A stretch of 64,000 nucleotides of DNA from Chlorokybus atmophyticus (taxonomy: Eukaryota; Plantae; Mesostigma and Chlorokybus algae). The translations under genes and the position numbers were made by a program. Shown here one piece after another: positions 4,407-38,537 of the stretch. Below the pieces are notes generated by a model that worked only from the letters and a program-made list of their open reading frames with translations, had not been told where the DNA came from and searched no databases. Each line of letters begins with the position of its first letter. Position 1 is the stretch's first letter. Where the stretch lies: the NCBI GenBank assembly GCA_009103225.1, contig RHPI01002910.1, forward strand, positions 129,123 through 193,122, in the 5' to 3' direction.

Positions 4407-7385
4407 TCAAGACAAGCAAGATATGCTGATTGTGCACGACCAAGACAGACCTGGCACTCCGCAGCGCTCCAGGAGTATACTGGCCAGTGACTTGGACAGC
4501 TGCACCTTGTTGGATGTGTATCCTTCAAGGACAGAACGCGCTGTGGATACGGCGGGGCTGATGTGGTCTTTGCTGGGGCCCTTCCTCAGGGCCCAGCGCG
4601 CATACATGGTCTGTTCAGGGACTAGATTGGCCAGCCACTCTGCGTGCCTGCGAACGGATGCTTGCACCATGAAGTGGAGCTTCATGAGGTGCACGTCTCC
4701 CGAGAGAACAATCAAACGCTGCATGTAGTAGTCGTTCCAGCCATTCGTCAGTATGCTGAACGCTTCATAACGCTTGTCGACGGTCGTATCACTTGGAATC
4801 AACTGCTTCCAAGTCCAGGACAGCGATAGCAGCGCGTCGTCAAACGCTTCGCGCACTCGACGCGGATGGTTCTCATATTCATCAAACATCTCCTCGTCGT
4901 CGCTGTCTGGAACAGGGAAGTCGTCCAGGATGACATCGTCGTCCAACACCCAGTGCTGGGTTCATCACAAGATATAATCAGGACCCAGTAGCTGCATGTT
5001 TTTGGCTTGTGGACTGGATGTACAACTAGTTACCAAGTTGGCACGCAACAGCATTTTGGGCACATCAACTTACTGTGTAGTCTTCCCTATCCGTAGGGTA
5101 GTACGCGTCCAAGTCGCATGCTGCACAAATTGCCTTGGATCACTTTTGTAAACAAGCATGTGTTGAGCACCTTCCATGCACAGGCAGCCTGGGCCAGTAC
5201 CAATGCGATGCGATGAAGCACGAATACCAAGAGCTGTAACAACAGCGACGTTGCCACGCTACTGGACACGGCACTTACCACGGGGCCCAAACAAGAGGTA
5301 GACGAAAGTGGCTTGTATATGCACGTCTGACCAGCGGCGCGCAAGCAGCCTGATGGTGGAGGCAGCAAAGGAAGAGAGCGGTACGCACTGCCTGTCTCCC
5401 GGCAACCGCATGAGCACGCCGCTGATGACTTCGCGAATCAACATGTCTTCTTGAAGGCTGAGAACACGACAATATTTCAGTACATGCTGCTGGCCGACTG
5501 CAAGCCTGCCTCCACTACAATGAAGTTGACCGTCAGTCAGTAAACAACGACAGTAAATAATTGTGAGGTCAAGCTTCACCTCATAGTCGCAGGCACAGCG
5601 TTGCGATGCTCGTAGCAGAGAAACTTGGCTTCATCGCTAACGCGGCACAGCTCCTGCAGCAACTTCAGCGGTTTCATGTGGCTGAACTCTTCCCTAAAGT
5701 AAGCAGCCAAAAATTCCGCCAGCATTGGTGCCGTATACCCTGTCAACACTGTGTGAGCACCCTACGAGAGTCAGTTTGCATGCAGCACAGCCTCAGCTGG
5801 TACCTCTCGTGACCAACTGCAGAACTCGCCACATCTCTTTGTAGGCACTTGATAAAACGAGCTTCTTGTGCGCTGTCGTTGCCAACACAAGCTGCTTGGT
5901 AAAGACTGCCCTGTCGCTTATGCTGCAAATACAACAGCATGTCATGTCATCCGTGCTTAGAGACTTACAGCTTGCTAGCCACAGTTTGTACACTTGACTG
6001 CCAGCAAACACCCAGTTGCAAGCACTGCTTAACATGGGTGTGCCTCACCTAGCTCGTGACACACAGTGCTCAGCTAGACTGCTTCCGTCATAACTCATCT
6101 AACAGTCTTCCTAATGAGGTTAGCAACTTAAAGAATAACTGACAACCCGCGTACCTGAAGCTGCAAGCTAGGGCGCGCACCAGCTGGCCAAGCCTGCCCG
6201 GCGTCTCTTGCAGCCAGGCAGCAGGCGTTGCACTTTGCGGTGTCACCTGGCACTGTACCGCCTTCAAGACCTCAGCGGACAGAATCTTGCTGGCCAGAGC
6301 CAGCGCAGACCAGTCCCCGATCGATAGTTGCTGTAAAACCAGCATGCAAACACTGAGCTGGGTTGCGCGTTGTACATGTGCATACTGGCTGCTGCCGTTC
6401 TGACTGCTCAGTTGGCATGCAGTCAAGGGCTTAACTACTAGTAACAGTAGTACTTGCTCAGCACGCTGCGCCAAAGCTAAAAGCAACTTGACTCCACTTG
6501 GGCGCACAAGCATACAAGAGGACAAACTGACTGATAGACAGCTCTGCTAGCTTTCTACTTGCAGCCTTCCAGGCTGCAAGTAGTCAGCTACACAGGCCTC
6601 AGCCGGTAAGCTACAAGCAGTGTGCTTCGGGAGTCTTATCTGACAAAGGAAGACAACCATTGCATGTAATGGTGCACAATGCTTACCTCCAGGATAAGCA
6701 CGAGCGTGTCTCTCGGCAGGCGTTCCAGGTGACTGCCACCACCAAGTGCCTGACGCGACTTGCTGCGCGTCATGTAGTGCCTGGACATCTTCAACTTGAA
6801 GGGGCGGCCTACCACTCTCTTCAGCTGGTTCAGCTTCTGCGTAACAAGACACAAGTACCTCAACCCGTAAGCAACGTGCTTGCAGTATTGAAGCATAAAT
6901 GTGACTCCATTTGTGTTGTAGTTTACTTTGCTGTGCACACACCGACCAGTGAAGACAGCAAGAAGTGAGCATGCATGCTGCCAGACGGCATTTGCAGCTG
7001 GAATCATGCACCACAGCACTGAGCAGGTTGTCTACTGTGCTACTCAACCAGAATTTGACACAATATATGTCGCAGTAAATGCGCAGCATAAGCTAGAACA
7101 GCCAGCTTGCCTGCAGAGGCACTGAGCTACAACTCACTTCAACAGGCTCTGGCGTTGATGTTCCAGCAGCAGAGCAGCTGGCATCAGCTTCTTGCGCAGC
7201 ACGGCTCTACCTTACGTAAGTTCAAGCGCATGCAACCTCTGAATCAAGGTCTATGACACGAAGCTGCCGCCGACAGCGCCGCCGCCGCCGCTCCAACAAA
7301 GCCGACGCGGCCACTGCAACAGGAACAGCGTGGTCATGTGACTTGGAGGAGCAGCAAAGCGTAGGAGGCACTCAGCTTCTTTCAT
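4407..7385 (-). CDS. Uncharacterised large multi-exon protein (boundaries uncertain)
   Basis: 180-codon exon-like ORF 4407..4949 (WVLDDDVILDDFPVPDSDDEEMFDEYE...) plus Leu-rich helical exon-like segments at about 5300-5480, 5800-5930, 6090-6500 and 6685-6890 with GT-AG signals. No family recognised; start and end uncertain. Confidence 0.5.
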
Positions 7386-7684
7386 GAGCTACAGGCGGTA
7401 TTAGCCCATGAGTCCAAACGCTGCGTCGTTGATAGTGGCAATTATGGCAATAATAAGCGTGAAGCTATGGACAATCTGCAGGCTATGTGTGCTGTGTTGA
7501 ACTCAAGGTTGTTCAGCACTGCTTCAGCAGCTATTCGTACCTTTGAGAGTGTGCATGGAAAGTAGCGCATACAGTTATGATAGTGCGTGTAAGCTTCTCC
7601 AAGGCGATTTTTGATGATATCACAATATATAACACACCTGGTACGCTTAACACATGATGTGTGCAATTATTAATGTCATGTAAG

Positions 7685-30635: not shown

Positions 30636-31608
30636 ACAACCCTGGAGGTGCGGGACTCAATACTCTGTGTGTGTGCGCATGTGCGTACGCGTTCTTGTTT
30701 GTGCGTCAGGTATGTGCATGTGGTTGGTTGGGTGCATGCGTATGTTCTCAATCGCCAATGAAGAACTCTACAACATGCTTGGATTGCACAACCCATGCGG
30801 TGCATAGTGTATATCTGCATGTTGAAAACCTCGCACTCAACTTGACAGCAATACATACCACACATGCATAGCCGCAACAACCACTATCGAACTCTGCACT
30901 GTCTGGTGCTGTGCACTCTTTGAGAATGCACTGCTATGCTGCCTGAACCCATCAGCATCACCATACATCCACGCACGCAAAGTGAGTCAACGGGCGAAAC
31001 ATGCGAGGGGCGGACAACGTGGCAAAATGCGACTAGTACTACTTTATGTTTATGTCTTATTCAGTTTATTTCCTAATCAGTTCAACGTTGCCTCTGGAAT
31101 GCGGACAGCGTGTGTCACAATTTGCGGTAGGGCCAACGCAACCAACTTACACCTTGTTCACGCAATACGAGCAGCAACTGACATGCGTCACAAGCAGCAT
31201 GCGGGGACAGATCAAGTATTACCCAGAGCTCACCTGCGAAGGAAGTGGTTGATACCGCAGCTCCCCGGCGCTCGCCAGCTCTTCTCCCCACCACCGCTCG
31301 CAGGCTACATCATTCCCCCTGCCTCGCAACACAGTCGGTCGCACAGAGGCCGCTCGAGACACACTGCCTTTCAGCGGAATATAGCAATAGAGCTACGCCA
31401 GCTGGCAGCTGGCTTATAGCGGATGCTCTTGGCCTTCCGCCCTCTGTTTCAGCCACCAGCTCCTTCTCAGCAGCAAACCATCAACTCTCTCGCTGCATCC
31501 TCAGCCCTTCTGCCGCTCCAACCCAGGTTTCAAGGCTGACTGTACTGCTAGCCCTAGGCCTTGCAGTCCTTCTCCTCCCGCTCCTGCCCCTCCTCCTCCT
31601 CCTCCTCT

Positions 31609-31856: not shown

Positions 31857-31883
31857 GGGCGGGCGGGCGGGCGGGCGGGCGGG
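31857..31883 (+). repeat. (GGGC)6GGG G-quadruplex-type tract upstream of the ABC locus
   Basis: gggcgggcgggcgggcgggcgggcggg. Confidence 0.85.
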
Positions 31884-32272
31884 TGAAGGCGGCGCTGGGG
31901 TTGAGGTGGGTCAAGGGATGTGCTGCAATCTTCCAATCCTCATGCCATGCGTCACTGCCGTCGTCATGTGCATGGGGGTCAATTGCGTGAGCGTGTACGC
32001 ATGCTCCCGACCGCTTGGGGTTCTTTTTGTTGGTGCTTCAATTGTGTATGGAGCTTGCATAGATGTACTGTGGAGAAGAGGCCGTTGGCTGCAAATCACA
32101 TCCGGTTGCGGCAACCGCTCAGTGCTAAGTCAGGGTTTCGTGAGGCGTTGGCTCATGAACAATCAATGCAACATGCAGCTTGCCGTCCCAATGTCTTGCC
32201 GCTGATAGTGACCTGTGATCTCCAGTTGGTGTGGATGCACTTTTGTTCGAGTTGCTGCGTGCATGGCAAGCT

Positions 32273-33667
32273 ATGACGCTTGTGCTCAGTGGCCTTTGCA
32301 AAAGCGTGCCGCTGTCCACCAGCACTAAGAGCAGCCAAACCAACCTCCAGCAAGTGCACAGCGACTGGGAGGTAAGCCGCCGCCGGGATTGCATAACAGA
32401 TTGCAGTGCAGTTTGATACATTACTTATTACTGTTTTTGCTACATGCGCCAGCTTTTTGCCATCACTCTTTTGAGCTAAGGCTCTTGCGTACGGGGACAA
32501 TGCTCATCCGATCTTTCTTGTCACATCTGCAGCATGTCTTCACTCATCAGTCATACATATAGACATAGAGCGCAATGAGCATGCCATTGTAGCCTAAGTA
32601 ATGAGGGTGTGGTGCATGCCAGTATCCAGCTTTGTCTTGCTCTGAGCCTAGGCTGTTAAGTTTGGTTGCAATGGAGCTTCTTGTAATGGCTTCAAGGCTG
32701 CAGCACTGTTTGCAGTCAGGCTAAACTTCTGCATCAACATACTTCGCTTTTAGGACTCGGAGCATCCTGGGCAGCGGAGCATTTTCAAGGCCCTTGACCT
32801 GACTGTCGCCTCGGGCGCCCGCTGCGTGGTGACGGGGCCGTCCGGCTGCGGGAAGAGCACCCTGCTGCGCGCCATCGCCCTGCTCGACCCTCTCGACGGC
32901 GGACAACTGAGCCTGAACAACTTGACTGTTGAAGAATTGGGCGTGTGCGAGTGGCGCAAACAGGTGTGTGTTACTGTATCTCTTTCAAAGCAGTGAAACA
33001 GTGTAACGTATTTATGCATTGTTACACTGTTGCATGTAACATTGTAAACAATGAGACAGTGGTTATACTATTATGGAACCATGTAATATGTTCCAACACT
33101 GTACATAAGAATGTTTTGCTTGGGCATACACGACTGATGATTTGATCTTTGGTGTTTTGGGTTTCCAGGTTGCATACGTGCCGCAGCGTGCACCGATCAG
33201 TCCCGGCGGGTCCAAATCGCCCGCAGAGCTTGCGTTGGTTGTTGAAGGGTTGCAGATCAACAAGCGTGACGGCCGCCTTTCGGTACATGCTGTTGCATGT
33301 AACTATGTCCTGCTTGTAGCTATGTCACTAGGCTTACGGTCCTCTTCTCTCAATGCAGCCGCAGGCCGGTTTGTTGTTGGCCGCCCAGCGCGTCGCGTCT
33401 GCGTGGGGCATCGACGAGGACACGTTCGCTCGTCCGTGGGACCAGTTGAGCGGCGGCGAGTCTCAGCGTTGCGCCCTCGCGGTCGCGGTTGCCACCCGTC
33501 CGGCGGTGCTGCTGCTGGACGAGCCCACGTCCGCCCTGGACGAAACCACCTGCCTGGCCGTCGAACACACGATCGTCTCGTCGGGATTCACCGTCGTGTG
33601 GGTCACCCACAGCCACGCACAGGCCCAACGCGTGGCCACGCAATACCTGGAACTCCCTCAGAAGTAG
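32273..33667 (+). CDS. Stand-alone ABC transporter ATP-binding subunit, FetA/YbbL/STAR1 type (ORF1 of a bicistronic locus), 243 aa
   Basis: Exons 32273-32371, 32754-32963, 33169-33282 and 33359-33667, all phase 0. Walker A TGPSGCGKSTLLR, Q-loop VAYVPQ, signature LSGGESQR, Walker B/D-loop LLLDEPTSALD, H-loop WVTHS; TAG 33665-33667. Confidence 0.9.
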
Positions 33668-33685
33668 AGTATTGTCCTCTCAGTC

Positions 33686-35694
33686 ATGGTTTCGTTTCAA
33701 GATGATCCAAGCGCTCAAGACAGCGGGCCCAACCTGTCTTTCACCGCCACGGTGCTCACGGGTTTGGTGATGGTGTTTGTCGGTGCTGTCACGCGGTACT
33801 TGCGTTTGGACCTCGAGAAGAAGATTGCCGTCGCATCGGTGCGATCCATCCTGCAGCTGACGGTGCTGGGCTACGTGCTCACACCCATCTTCACAGCCAA
33901 CAACCTCTACTTGGTGCTGGCGCTGACGGTGTTCATGCTTCTTGTTGCTGCAACGGAAGCACAGGTACTACTTGCTAGTGGTCGGCATCATGCAACATCA
34001 TTGCCATTATGCTCCTTGCACATGTGTCGCTGCTTATTAATGTTTCTCACATCATGTCATCATAGAGTTTCTACCATGTATAATAAGCTGTTGCTTCAGC
34101 ACAGCCATGCTTGCGCTCTTATTCTCTCGTTGCTAGCAACGCATTTTCGACCAGTATGTAAAACGTTTGTTGAGCAACTGAAGTTACTGTGCAACATGTG
34201 CGGATTGCTAACTTGGTGCGAGTTTTGTGCTGGCTGTTTCAAAGTGTTTGTTGTGTTGTTATGCAGGCCCAGCTACAGTACAGTTACCGCGGCATGTACA
34301 CCGACACCCTCTTTGCAATGGCTAGCGGGGTTGGTGTGAGTTGCGCCATTGGCATCTTCCTGATTGTGCGTCCTCGGCCCTGGTGGCACCCCAACACGTC
34401 CGTCCCGCTGTGGGGGATGATCCTCGGCAACGCGCTCACCGCCGTCGCGCTGGGACTAGGAACCACCATGAACACGCTGGGAAACAGAGCGGAGCGAGAC
34501 AACATCGAGTACATGCTAGCAAGAGGCGCACGTAAGTGATGAAAGGCTATCAGCTGGATTGCCACATCAGCTGATGCGCAATTACATGACGCATTGTCCT
34601 TGGTCTTCCTTTTGTATTGTGCAATCTTTTATTGGTAAGAGCTCGCGTATTGGCGTATACTATTGTTGCAAGTGTAGTGTTGAGATTAGATGAAACCATG
34701 TATGTCTATGTTTATGTTCACTTGCAGCATAGGACTGGAGTGATGTGCTGCAATGCTGGCTTGCAGGTTTGTGGGAGGCTTGTTTGCCTATCGCAAAGGC
34801 GGCCGTGCTTCGCGGTCTCACCCCAACCCTCAACAGCATGTCCGTCATCGGCCTTGTGGCTATCCCTGGCATGATGACGGGGCAGATTCTCGGCGGGGCC
34901 TCACCCATGCAGGTAAGGAATGCACCATGACACTAGGCACCTGTGGACATGGCACTCCTCCAAGCGTCCACATTGTGACACATGCTGTGCAATGCTCGCT
35001 TGCAGGCAGCTCGGTACCAGATCGTTATCATGTTCCTGCTCGCCTGCAGCGCAACTACTGTTGTCATCACCTCTGTTCTGCTCACACTACAGGTACAGAG
35101 GAAAACACCCCACTTTTCAGGCTTCAGTCGTCACAATTCAGTTGTCACAGTCCATACACCGTCGCATGCATCTGCTGGCCATCTTGGCATGTACCCCTGC
35201 ATCATCAGTCCATTTTCACAACATGCATCTCTTGCTATGTGTTTTGTACATGACCCTCACTCACTGCATGGACACAGCACTCTCAAAGCAACGCTTTGCC
35301 AACAACGCGGTGCTGTTTCAATTGCAACAACGTATTGTGCAAAGTCCCTCACAGTGTGTCTATTAGTAGCAGTGTGGATGCACCTACACCTTGTTGCACA
35401 GTCCATTGCAGATGTCATTGTCCAAACACCAGGCTCAATCGCTCCCCTTACACCGTCTGACCTTGCCAGGCCTTGACGGACAACATGCAGCGGCTGCGTC
35501 CTGAGCGTCTGACTCCCAAGCCGAAGGGCTCCGACGTAGTGATGCGTCTGCTGGCCGCCATCTGGCAGCTGCTCACCCTTGTGGGCCGATGCCTATCATG
35601 GCCGTGCCGATACTGCGTCGACCGCGTCAGGAAGCGGCAGGATCCGCACCACTTCAGTGCCGTGCCCGTCGAGGAAGCGGAGGAGACGGCTTAG
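33686..35694 (+). CDS. UPF0014 family ABC permease, FetB/YbbM/STAR2-ALS3 type (ORF2 of a bicistronic locus)
   Basis: ATG 33686; exons 33686-33964, about 34267-34531, 34769-34912, 35007-35091 and 35471-35694. Motifs LDLEKKIAVASVRSILQLTVLGYVL, PLWGMILGNA and GLVAIPGMMTGQILGGASPMQAARYQIVIMF; TAG 35692-35694. Confidence 0.92.
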
Positions 35695-36107
35695 AACTGT
35701 GAGGGTCCGTTGACTTGTGTGGGGGTGAAGCCGAACCAGCGGACCGCGTACGCCACATCCCACCCAAGTATGAAATGAACAACCAGTTAGCAGAAGAAGA
35801 CAAGCAGAGAAGGAGCAGTTCAGACTGATGCACAGGCAGTGTTTTTGGTTTTGAGGTGTTGGTTGGGGGATGAGAGTCAGATTTGGTATATACCTTTGTG
35901 CGGTTGTGAAGGGCAGTAGTAGTACTAGACTGGTGTGTGCAAATTGAGGTACGAAGATTGTGTTTTTCCCAGCACCTTCTGGCAGCCTTGATTGTAAAAA
36001 CGAAATTTTCTTATAGAGCAGCCACGCAGATATTGGTCCACTTTAGCGACTCTGAACAGGTCGATTACTAATCAGTTTACCTGGCTGGAGCACTATGGTT
36101 CACACTG

Positions 36108-36286
36108 CAGGCGTCACGCGATTGTAGTGCACAATGGGAGGCAATTGTGCACTACAATCGCCATACACTGTGGTGATGTATGGCGATTGTTAACCCAGGC
36201 GTCTCGCGAATGTAGTGCACAATGGGAGGCAATTGTGCACTACAATCGCCATACATTGTGGTGTGATGTATGGCGATTGTTAACCC
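36108..36286. repeat. Two tandem ~88-bp units, each with two overlapping inverted repeats
   Basis: Units start at 36108 and 36196 (CAGGCGTC...). Stem A GCGATTGTAGTGCACAAT/ATTGTGCACTACAATCGC (18 bp); stem B ACAATCGCCATACA/TGTATGGCGATTGT (14 bp). Confidence 0.92.
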
Positions 36287-36288
36287 AA

Positions 36289-36358
36289 ACTCAGAAACAA
36301 CAATGTCCTTTGCAGCAACACTGCAGTGTTGCTGCAAACGACATTGTTGTTCCTGAGT
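36289..36358. repeat. 70-bp near-perfect palindrome
   Basis: ACTCAGAAACAACAATGTCCTTTGCAGCAACACTG|CAGTGTTGCTGCAAACGACATTGTTGTTCCTGAGT, 33 of 35 pairs, no loop. Confidence 0.95.
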
Positions 36359-36650
36359 GTGAAGTCATATTCTACAGACCATCGTCACTCAACCCAATCA
36401 AAGAGCCACCAAGCGCATAGCATAGCGCACTTGGTCTGTCTACCGACAAACCAAGTCCTCTCAACCTTGCAAACACTGAGGCAACAATCAAATTGCAGGG
36501 AACAACTGATACCACCAGATGTATCTATACCCTTTCCCTTTCCACCGTCAGTACGACTGTTCAATGCAACCAATCAATCAGCGTTTACAACCATCCAGTC
36601 AATGCATAACATCACCGACATACGACCGCCCTCATCGTCATTCAACACCC

Positions 36651-38537
36651 TCACGCGAGCTTGGGGCAGTTGGGCGCGACCGTGCGCGCAGTCGGACACG
36701 TGGCGAAGCATGGCTGGGCCCTGGCCTCGTCCTCCTCGATTGGCGGGGGAACCTGACCGAAGATCATCTCGCACGAGAGGTCCTCGAAGTTGGGCTTCAT
36801 TGTCAAAGGCATGCTGCGAGAGACAAAGGAGAGGTAAATGAGTGGACATGTGTCTGGTGGGTAGAGTTGCATGTCGTGTTGATGTGTCTGGTTGTAGAAT
36901 GTTACCCCATCTCTTCGGTAAAGAACTTCTGCGTGGGGAACTTGCAGAGGTTGACGCACATTCCAACACACCCGCTCGTCTGCAATAAGAGGCCAACTCA
37001 AAACAGCAGCAGGGACCATGCACATGTACACGCACACTTGCACACTCTGTCATGCACATTCGCGCACGCAGCACCAGCATCACCAATACTAACTATTACT
37101 TAATCTCGTCACGGACTCACCTCGAGGTAGCGACATTTCTTGATGTGGACTTGCGAGTGCTGAGTGACACCGTTGATCTCGACGTTTTGTACCTCCATGG
37201 GACCGACGAGCCACGTGAAGAAGGTGGGCGTGATCCACGCGTTGAGCTCCGCGCCCCACTTCGTATACGCAAACACTTTCCGGAACCACTCTGGGACCTT
37301 GTGACAACAAGCGTCATTACCACAATGTTGTATAAACCCAACAAAACAACAAGGGTTGTCACTCACGCGCTCAATATGTCCAGTATCAATGACACGCACT
37401 GGACATAACAAGTGCGTGAGGGAGAGAAGGCAAAGCAAACAAAATGTGCACAGTGCGGTACAGTAGACCAAACTGACCTTGGGAAAGCCTTGCAATACAG
37501 CTTCATGCTGCTGCTTAGCTGTTCTGCTCTGCATTGCATAATAGAGGTAAGGGAGGGAGCCTTGGACAACAAGGCACGTACTCATGTTGCAGAATCTGCC
37601 TTCTGTAGGGGGAGACAAACACAGACAGCGCGTATGGGCAGCGCACGTACCCTCATCATTGCGTGTGACACCTCGACCATACCCAAGTAGCCCTCCTTGA
37701 AGCTCCGCGGAGACTGCATCCAACAAGTAAAAGTGCGTGAGTGTGCGCATGCATGTGCCGCAAGCGATACCCGTGTGCATGCGTGTGCGTCGCATATGCA
37801 TATGTGAGTGTGGGCATGCTAGCATGTGCATGGGCGTGCGCATGTGTGCAAGGACACACTTCCGCTCACTCCAACCAACAACTCACCTGCCAGCCCGCCA
37901 CTCTTCCATAAGCCTGCCTCATGAGCGCAATGAACATCAGGTCTGTAAATGAGTCTTTGTACTCGGTCTTCTCACTAGTCGTGGCCGCCTCCCCTGTTCC
38001 CACAGCAACATTGCCCTCCCTGCCAACATTGTCACCACTACTGCTGCTACTCGCCCTGCACGCCAACTGAGCGCCTCTCCTCTTGCTTCTGGTGGGGTTC
38101 AGTGCTGGTCTTGATGGAGTGTTGTTGGGCTTGGAGGCATGTCTTGACTTGGGTGTTGGTAATGTGCGGAGGGAAGCTGCTGCTGAAGTGAGACTGCAGT
38201 GCATACAAGCAACAATAAGAAGGTGGTGGACAAAGGGAGAGGGCAATGGTGATGGACGCACGAACGCAAGGGAGCAAGAGAAGAAGGAACTGCAGTGACT
38301 GATATGCCATACACTACACGAGAATTGCTGTGTGACGTGTTACACAACACAGGTTGTAACACTCTGCGCTCAAACTCAGTGGCCTAGTCCAGGTCAGTGA
38401 GTGTGCATCAGCTTGGTGGTGACCAAGGCACTGAGTCAACGCACTGCTACAGACCAGTTGCGAGGCGCACACAGCTCATTCATTGTGCGCTCCACAGGGA
38501 AAGTGGTATAGACTCACCACAGCTGATGCGCCGCCAT
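36651..38537 (-). CDS. D27: DWARF27-family beta-carotene isomerase (DUF4033), plastid-targeted
   Basis: MAAHQLC|LTSAAAS... transit-like leader; EYKDSFTDLMFIALM; FFTWLVGPMEV...VHIKKCRYLE; CVGMCVNLCKFPTQKFF; LTMKPNFEDLSCEMIFGQVPP; TGA at 36651-36653 (minus). Could be a D27-like paralogue. Confidence 0.88.

Follow-up and report, generated by a model that had tools for sequence, protein, structure and literature searches.

A candidate bicistronic nuclear gene for both subunits of a FetAB-type ABC transporter in the alga Chlorokybus atmophyticus

The window analysed here, a stretch of 64,000 nucleotides (nt) from Chlorokybus atmophyticus (contig RHPI01002910.1, positions 129,123 to 193,122), carries two consecutive open reading frames, ORF1 and ORF2, which encode an ATP-binding cassette (ABC) ATPase and a UPF0014 permease. 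We consider it likely, with a probability of roughly 0.7, that the two form a nuclear bicistronic gene with one promoter and one polyadenylation site, from which the ATPase and then the permease of a single FetAB-type ABC transporter are expressed, ORF2 being reached by ribosomes that have moved past the ORF1 AUG. The predicted spliced mRNA measures at least 2.15 kb. Such a transcript had been proposed in an original prediction made from the letters of the DNA, and the present analysis supports it on several grounds: a spliced contig runs across the junction of the two ORFs, no ATG lies between their start codons, the sole exonic TGTAA follows ORF2, most coding differences between strains are synonymous over both ORFs, and the arrangement is kept in relatives.

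All coordinates of both ORFs were re-derived from the window sequence by joining exons at GT..AG borders on the plus strand. The 243-residue ATPase ORF with its terminal TAG, the permease ATG at 33686 and the 18-nt spacer all stood as first proposed (Table 1). ORF2 is 1002 nt long, encodes 333 amino acids in five exons and also ends in TAG. A single uninterrupted exon (33359-33964) indeed contains the 3' portion of ORF1, the spacer and the 5' portion of ORF2. Both ORFs are read in the same frame, in which a single TAG followed by six sense codons separates them.

Four public runs were aligned to the window between positions 31400 and 37000, namely the RNA runs X1, X2 and X3, and X5, whose contigs contain introns and are DNA-like. 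All four consist of assembled contigs with flat depth, from which 5' ends and poly(A) sites are not readable. In the contigs of the RNA runs, GT..AG joints were seen for all seven coding introns, which confirms the expectation of spliceosomal introns in both ORFs, and for one intron in the 5' untranslated region (UTR; 31906-32225). One RNA-run contig of 2,051 nt (X1 record 2, 32752-36092), with six coding introns spliced out, passes from ORF1 exon 2 through exons 3 and 4 to the TAG, the spacer and the ATG, and on through all ORF2 exons into the 3' UTR. Contigs of X3 (RNA) and X5 likewise span 33559-33725. The strain of X1 differs from the window at 22 listed positions, yet TAG and spacer are identical in X1, X2, X3 and X5. 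Nine of the 11 coding differences between window and X1 are synonymous (2/2 in ORF1, 7/9 in ORF2). The two ORFs are intact and spliced, and purifying selection acts on both. The only exonic TGTAA (35993-35997) lies after ORF2, with the X2 contig ending 28 nt further on; no TGTAA was found in exons before 35993, and no AATAAA in any exon of the locus.

The 747 nt from the ATG of ORF1 to that of ORF2 are devoid of ATG in all frames. Dinucleotide-preserving shuffles of this stretch contained 5.5 ATG on average and none in only 0.04% of cases (P about 0.0004); ORF2, by contrast, holds 18 ATG in its 1002 nt. The desert exists mainly because the ATPase has no internal methionine (Met), the median number of Met after residue 30 being three in 120 ATPase homologues. 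Five of six separate or fused ATPases of the family carry internal Met: there are three in the separate ATPase of Coemansia and four in that of Porphyridium, three in the ATPase-permease fusion P0131, and zero, three and four in permease-ATPase fusions. The bacterial fetA-like gene used as comparator (locus L016) has four ATG.

Homologues of ORF2 were traced to their contigs in order to compare the arrangement in relatives (Table 2). The expectation that order and short spacing would be conserved in related algae was largely upheld. The ATPase precedes the permease in the trebouxiophytes Trebouxia, Nannochloris and Myrmecia, in Pavlova, and in the loci labelled L002 to L004 and L012 to L015, several of which are cDNA-like contigs, and outside the trebouxiophytes the spacers range from -4 to +33 nt. 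The desert is not universal, since the ORF1 of L003 has four to five ATG and those of Trebouxia and Myrmecia have one or two Met near their C-termini. Taken together, the comparison suggests that an ATG-free stretch of 660-890 nt has been kept under selection independently in each lineage, and that the arrangement is ancient.

The closest relative of ORF2 is a protein model of Mesostigma viride, Mv09354 (P0241; 554 amino acids, 49% identity), which joins the permease to a C-terminal ATPase half that shares 55% identity with ORF1. The Mesostigma locus is known from this protein model alone, and the joined model indicates that the two genes are colinear in Mesostigma too. A similar model from Myrmecia bisecta, P0063 (556 amino acids), was rejected as a real fusion: in the genome (L001:5001-13374), a stop at 7118 precedes the ORF2 ATG at 7634, and the model leaves out the final third of the ATPase together with its stop and the ORF2 start. 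Both merged models are annotation artefacts of a two-ORF locus. Single-chain forms do occur elsewhere, as permease-ATPase fusions of 548-681 amino acids (P0249, P0257, P0258, P0261) and as an ATPase-permease fusion (P0131 by sequence; P0394, from the same MMETSP cluster, is as long as a full fusion). In the fungus Choanephora, no ATPase gene was found adjoining the permease.

The L002 contig (L002:1-745) opens with a template-switch cDNA adapter, GTATCAACGCAGAGTACGGGGG, looks 5'-complete and holds both ORFs. Its first ATG is that of ORF2, at 745, and is preceded by an intact 214-codon ATPase ORF devoid of an AUG start, which would therefore need a near-cognate start such as the TTG at 67. In its close relative L003 (L003:1100-1900), ORF1 retains at least one intron, and ORF2 overlaps the ORF1 stop, lies out of frame with ORF1 and has no ATG near the expected start; this may be an unspliced or odd copy, or a case of alternative starting or frameshifting. 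In Pavlova lutheri (L009:708-3378; also L010 and L011), the ABC ATPase and UPF0014 ORFs are followed on the same strand by a Ribosomal_L19 ORF of bacterial type, at a distance from UPF0014 that lies between about 200 nt in L009 and about 490 nt in L011; this ORF could be a third cistron or a mere close neighbour in a compact genome.

Table 1. Features of the Chlorokybus atmophyticus locus in window coordinates.
Feature	Coordinates	Strand	Remarks
5' leader, known part of non-coding exon 1	31881-31905	+	X2 contig record 5: the 26 letters preceding 32224 match 31880-31905
5'-UTR intron, GT..AG	31906-32225	+	Loose end of X2 contig record 5 at 32224, read against the window sequence
5' leader in exon 2	32226-32272	+	Two upstream ATGs; included in X2 contig record 5
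ORF1, ABC ATPase	32273-32371, 32754-32963, 33169-33282, 33359-33667	+	732 nt, 243 amino acids, 4 exons
ORF1 Walker A	32835-32858	+	
ORF1 signature LSGGE	33446-33469	+	
ORF1 Walker B and D-loop	33509-33541	+	
ORF1 H-loop	33599-33613	+	
ORF1 stop TAG	33665-33667	+	In frame with ORF2
Inter-ORF spacer AGTATTGTCCTCTCAGTC	33668-33685	+	18 nt, no ATG
ORF2, UPF0014 (FetB/ALS3 family) permease	33686-33964, 34267-34531, 34767-34912, 35006-35092, 35470-35694	+	
3' UTR	35695-36092	+	RNA contigs stop at 36021 (X2) and 36092 (X1)

Table 2. The ATPase-permease pair in relatives.
Locus	Stop-to-start distance and frame	ATG or Met before ORF2	Shuffle result
L002	33 nt, same frame	675 nt ATG-free, no ATG anywhere before ORF2	P 0.006
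L004	4-nt ATGA overlap, out of frame	659 nt ATG-free	P 0.0007
L012-L015 (four samples)	5 nt, out of frame	662 nt ATG-free (L013)	P 0.0013
Pavlova lutheri	3 nt, same frame	708 nt ATG-free	0/3,000 shuffles so low
Nannochloris	98 nt, out of frame	887 nt ATG-free	0/3,000 shuffles so low
Trebouxia	153 nt (annotated gene ends)	1 Met near ORF1 C-terminus	
Myrmecia	about 515 nt	2 Met near ORF1 C-terminus	

The assignment of both ORFs to their families agreed with the original prediction. ORF1, which was analysed as exon pieces and by scripts, matched the Pfam family ABC_tran in exons 2 and 4, and its motifs GPSGCGKS, LSGGESQR, LLLDEPTSALD and WVTHS are intact at the expected places. FetA was among the NCBIfam matches of both ORF1 exon pieces, and with the full-length homologues L006 and L004 it took first or second place. 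Exons 1-4 of ORF2 matched UPF0014 (PF03649) in profile order, over positions 5-237 of 242. A search with ORF2 exon 1 led to an annotated protein of 333 amino acids that is 100% identical to ORF2 (jgi/Chlat1/8163/Chrsp76S07618). We take Chlat1 to be the JGI code for Chlorokybus atmophyticus, an early-diverging streptophyte alga, and the guess of a streptophyte lineage, made from the DNA, thus proved correct. The ORF1 protein of Chlorokybus was not returned from the protein collection by a search with its closest relative, and is probably unannotated.

Against the NCBIfam model TIGR00245 (FetB), ORF2 scored 121 bits, below the equivalog cut-off of 410 bits; ORF2 is therefore a family member and not a FetB equivalog, and iron export cannot be assumed. 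The predicted model of ORF2 (mean predicted local distance difference test score, pLDDT, 88) could be superposed on AlphaFold models of E. coli FetB (TM-score by hit 0.87, 29% identity), Arabidopsis ALS3 (0.79, 29%) and rice STAR2 (0.74, 30%); no solved structure of this fold was found, either by sequence or by Foldseek. In land plants, STAR1 and STAR2/ALS3 are separate monocistronic loci with reported roles in aluminium tolerance, UDP-glucose being the reported substrate in rice. The Chlorokybus pair resembles rice STAR1/STAR2 and Arabidopsis AtSTAR1/ALS3 in its two families and in the superposable permease models; however, at 29-30% identity ORF2 is no closer to the plant permeases than to E. 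coli FetB. Among the best 120 word-search matches of ORF2, and among 20 representatives whose source names were checked, none was named as a plant protein. Thus, of the proposal that the pair is separate in land plants, family membership of STAR2/ALS3 stood, but the plant genes compared belong to a different branch, as distant from ORF2 as FetB is; they are family members whose orthology to ORF2 is not demonstrated. Export of iron or of a UDP-sugar by the Chlorokybus pair would be a guess at the level of the family. Family knowledge and congruent protein trees suggest that the products of ORF1 and ORF2 may form one complex.

The start codon of ORF1 lies in the context GCT-ATG-A (G at -3, A at +4), and that of ORF2 in GTC-ATG-G (G at both -3 and +4). 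We propose that some 40S subunits would initiate at the ORF1 AUG, while others would bypass it, meet no AUG over the 747 nt that follow and initiate at the ORF2 AUG. Such a bypass could occur through leaky scanning, or through translation of a short upstream ORF (uORF) that overlaps the ORF1 start. Both upstream ATGs of the leader are in poor context, with T at -3: the first, at 32235, starts a uORF of 13 codons with a TGA overlapping the ORF1 ATG (ATGA), and the second, at 32263, starts one of 21 codons that crosses the ORF1 start in another frame, the pair spanning 32235-32328. Ribosomes finishing the uORF from 32263 would, if scanning resumes, next meet the ORF2 AUG. With no AUG before ORF2, the desert would therefore serve leaky scanning and reinitiation after the short uORF alike. 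Two partner subunits would thereby be co-expressed from one transcript, in a ratio set by start-site strength, and the layout would retain the order and tight spacing of bacterial fetA-fetB.

Several observations weigh against a bicistronic mRNA read in this manner. The leader is at least 72 nt long with two upstream ATGs, and the ORF1 AUG has a purine at -3, whereas the leaders of published algal bicistrons tend to be short and ATG-poor, and their ORF1 contexts weak (PMC11892635). The statistical case for the desert in Chlorokybus is also less strong than the shuffles imply: 13 of the 120 ATPase homologues lack Met beyond residue 30, including several from the related eukaryote-like group, and, given the ORF1 protein sequence, the absence of out-of-frame ATG has a P of about 0.32. 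A conservative estimate for Chlorokybus alone is roughly 0.02-0.03, and the weight of the argument therefore comes from the recurrence of the desert across lineages. Four exon junctions lie downstream of the ORF1 stop, and a stop placed upstream of exon junctions normally invites nonsense-mediated decay. Translation of both ORFs is a prediction, for which the preponderance of synonymous strain differences speaks. As for the RNA, a de Bruijn contig that covers two genes is no proof of one molecule. In addition, the X2 contig over ORF2 begins at 33654, 11 nt before the TAG of ORF1, and X2 depth over ORF1 is about half that over ORF2 (6.1 versus 13.7); both features are compatible with an internal start site, and a 3' bias or a coverage gap would explain them equally well.

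If the mRNA is indeed single, ORF2 could also be reached by termination-reinitiation, in which ribosomes finishing ORF1 would restart at the AUG 18 nt further on, as in bacterial coupling or viral stop-restart. The tiny spacers speak for this mechanism, which we regard as unlikely: besides the 18 nt of Chlorokybus, they measure 33 nt in L002, 5 nt in L012-L015 and 3 nt in Pavlova, with a 4-nt overlap in L004, and the bacterial fetAB-like pair overlaps by 4 nt as well, a closeness that leaky scanning alone does not require. Reinitiation after an ORF of 243 codons, however, is normally very inefficient in eukaryotes. It would moreover leave the purge of ATG from ORF1 unexplained, and it fits poorly with trebouxiophyte spacers of 98-515 nt and with a junction that holds no structured element (fold z-score +0.41). 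Mutational tests on other Auxenochlorella bicistrons favoured leaky scanning (PMC11892635). Termination-reinitiation after ORF1 is thus a weaker explanation than leaky scanning.

Two overlapping mRNAs could also give rise to the contigs observed, if the ORF2 start site lay inside the last exon of ORF1, the ORF1 mRNA ended inside ORF2 and the assembly merged both by k-mer overlap. The X2 contig that starts at 33654 with twice the depth of the ORF1 contig would be expected in such a case, and a contig over two genes does not show a single transcript. We nevertheless find this arrangement decidedly unlikely. Neither TGTAA nor AATAAA occurs in the exons before 35993, where an ORF1 mRNA would have to end, and the relatives' spacers of -4 to +33 nt offer no room for a promoter. 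An ATG-free ORF1 would be purposeless if it were never scanned, yet it recurs in several distant lineages, and the cDNA-like L002 contig with its template-switch adapter carries both ORFs.

Programmed read-through of the in-frame TAG, which would yield a fused ATPase-permease half-transporter alone or beside the separate products, is very improbable. The shared frame of ORF1 and ORF2, found likewise in L002 and Pavlova, and the existence of natural ATPase-permease fusions (P0131; P0394 by length) would suit it, but L003, L004, L012-L015 and Nannochloris are out of frame, and the three of seven loci or groups in frame are near the one-third expected by chance. UAG-AGU-AUU is not known as a read-through motif, the same z-score of +0.41 gives no stimulatory structure after the stop, ORF2 retains its own AUG in strong context, and read-through has no need of an ATG desert. 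With a frame that is not conserved and an unstructured junction, read-through is ruled out as a conserved mechanism. Finally, the possibility of one fused gene whose TAG stems from faulty sequencing or assembly, a condition named in the original prediction as refuting it and suggested by the shared reading frame and nothing else, can be discarded, because all four runs, among them one from a diverged strain and the DNA-like one, show the identical TAG and spacer, and relatives carry independent stops at the same place.

The bicistronic arrangement was set against the history of the two proteins, with the qualification that both protein trees are unrooted and weak at their deep nodes. The ORF2 tree pairs Chlorokybus with Mesostigma as sister taxa (90/69) within a clade (100/99) that also holds L002/L003, the L004 group and a diplonemid-labelled transcript, and the trebouxiophytes and Pavlova fall outside it. 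The ORF1 tree recovers the same Chlorokybus clade (99/95) and places the trebouxiophytes in a separate one (100/98). The agreement of the two trees indicates that the two cistrons were inherited as a unit. Neither tree, given its unrooted and weak deep nodes, resolves a bacterial donor or a single eukaryotic origin. The earlier proposal of an intronised bacterial operon therefore holds in part: order and tight spacing match a fetAB-like pair and make an operon origin plausible, but no donor emerges from the trees. Somewhat more tentatively, and with less than even odds in our estimate, a fetAB-like operon may have entered eukaryotes once or a few times and survived intact in streptophyte algae, chlorophytes, a haptophyte and protists, its ORF1 purged of AUGs, while being fused in either order or separated elsewhere.

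The locus shares with bacterial fetA-fetB (ybbL-ybbM) operons the tight succession of ATPase and UPF0014 permease; in L016, from a Deltaproteobacteria metagenome-assembled genome, the two genes overlap by 4 nt, and ORF2 is 47% identical to the FetB-named protein of that locus. Unlike the bacterial genes, the Chlorokybus pair has seven spliceosomal introns, a eukaryote-type C-terminal extension of the permease and an ATG-free ORF1 (four ATG in the bacterial gene).

Polycistronic nuclear mRNAs are themselves well documented in green algae. Gallaher et al. 2021 (PMC7896298) reported hundreds of them in chlorophytes, about 80% of which encode at least one protein of unknown function, and Duenas et al. 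2025 in PNAS (PMC11892635) described weak ORF1 contexts and ATG depletion before ORF2, with leaky scanning supported by mutagenesis in Auxenochlorella. The Chlorokybus locus resembles these mRNAs in its colinear conserved ORFs, its short gap, the ATG depletion upstream of ORF2 and the introns in both ORFs. It differs in that its ORF1, at 732 nt, is about twice the published median of 291-357 nt, in that its products are recognisable as the predicted subunits of one complex, and in that the host is an early-diverging streptophyte.

The same pair is in fact present among the curated bicistrons of Auxenochlorella protothecoides (PMC11892635). UTEX250_A04.07340 (ORF1, 729 nt) and UTEX250_A04.07335 (ORF2) are entered in Dataset S01B with a 5' UTR of 16 nt, an inter-ORF distance of 147 nt and no ATG before ORF2, and are annotated as ABC ATPase and UPF0014 in Dataset S05; Dataset S02 lists colinear matches in other trebouxiophytes, one of them entered as PACBIO. 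The locus stands in these supplementary tables only, the main text mentioning neither it nor any streptophyte (PMC11892635). The Auxenochlorella proteins (P0412 and P0410) are 38% identical to Chlorokybus ORF1 and 41% to ORF2. Families, order, ORF1 length (729 versus 732 nt) and the absence of ATG between the two starts are thus common to both loci. The spacer, in contrast, is 147 nt there and 18 nt in Chlorokybus, the 16-nt, ATG-free leader of Auxenochlorella faces one of at least 72 nt with two upstream ATGs, and the two loci belong to separate clades in both trees, one from a chlorophyte and the other from a streptophyte.

None of the papers searched links Chlorokybus with nuclear polycistrons. 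A bicistron shared by land plants and Chlamydomonas, CDC26-TTM3, which Duenas et al. 2025 (PMC11892635) cite, shows that streptophyte bicistrons are not unprecedented; like the present pair, it is a bicistronic locus kept in both major green lineages, but it encodes unrelated proteins. Both the type of feature and this gene pair are therefore already known; the occurrence in a streptophyte and in a haptophyte appears to be new, as does the breadth of the ATG desert.

The surroundings of the transcription unit hold several further features. A (GGGC)n microsatellite at 31858-31884 lies in or just before the first 5'-UTR exon, and the contigs break there; the real 5' end of exon 1 is upstream of 31881, within or before the (GGGC)n run. 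Just past the 3' end of the transcript, two tandem units of about 86 nt occupy 36108-36290, and the X1 contig stops at 36092 before them. Each unit has an internal inverted repeat, GATTGTAGTGCACAAT...ATTGTGCACTACAATC, and resembles a small foldback element. A convergent gene lies on the minus strand (window 36464-37000, with a CT..AC joint at 36813/36906); its 3' end and that of the bicistronic transcript are about 400 nt apart.

The locus offers a clean case in which two cistrons would encode both subunits of a single machine, ordered as in bacterial operons, and it does so in an alga of the earliest branch of the plant lineage. It may serve as a natural test bed for how a second cistron is reached past a long first one, for subunit stoichiometry and for escape from nonsense-mediated decay. 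It also flags errors of annotation, in the artificial fusion models of Mesostigma and Myrmecia and in the Chlorokybus ORF1 that was not found in the protein collection. If the entry of a fetAB-like operon into eukaryotes were true, these loci would form a natural series showing the eukaryotic domestication of an operon, with, in L002, a first cistron that even lacks an AUG start.

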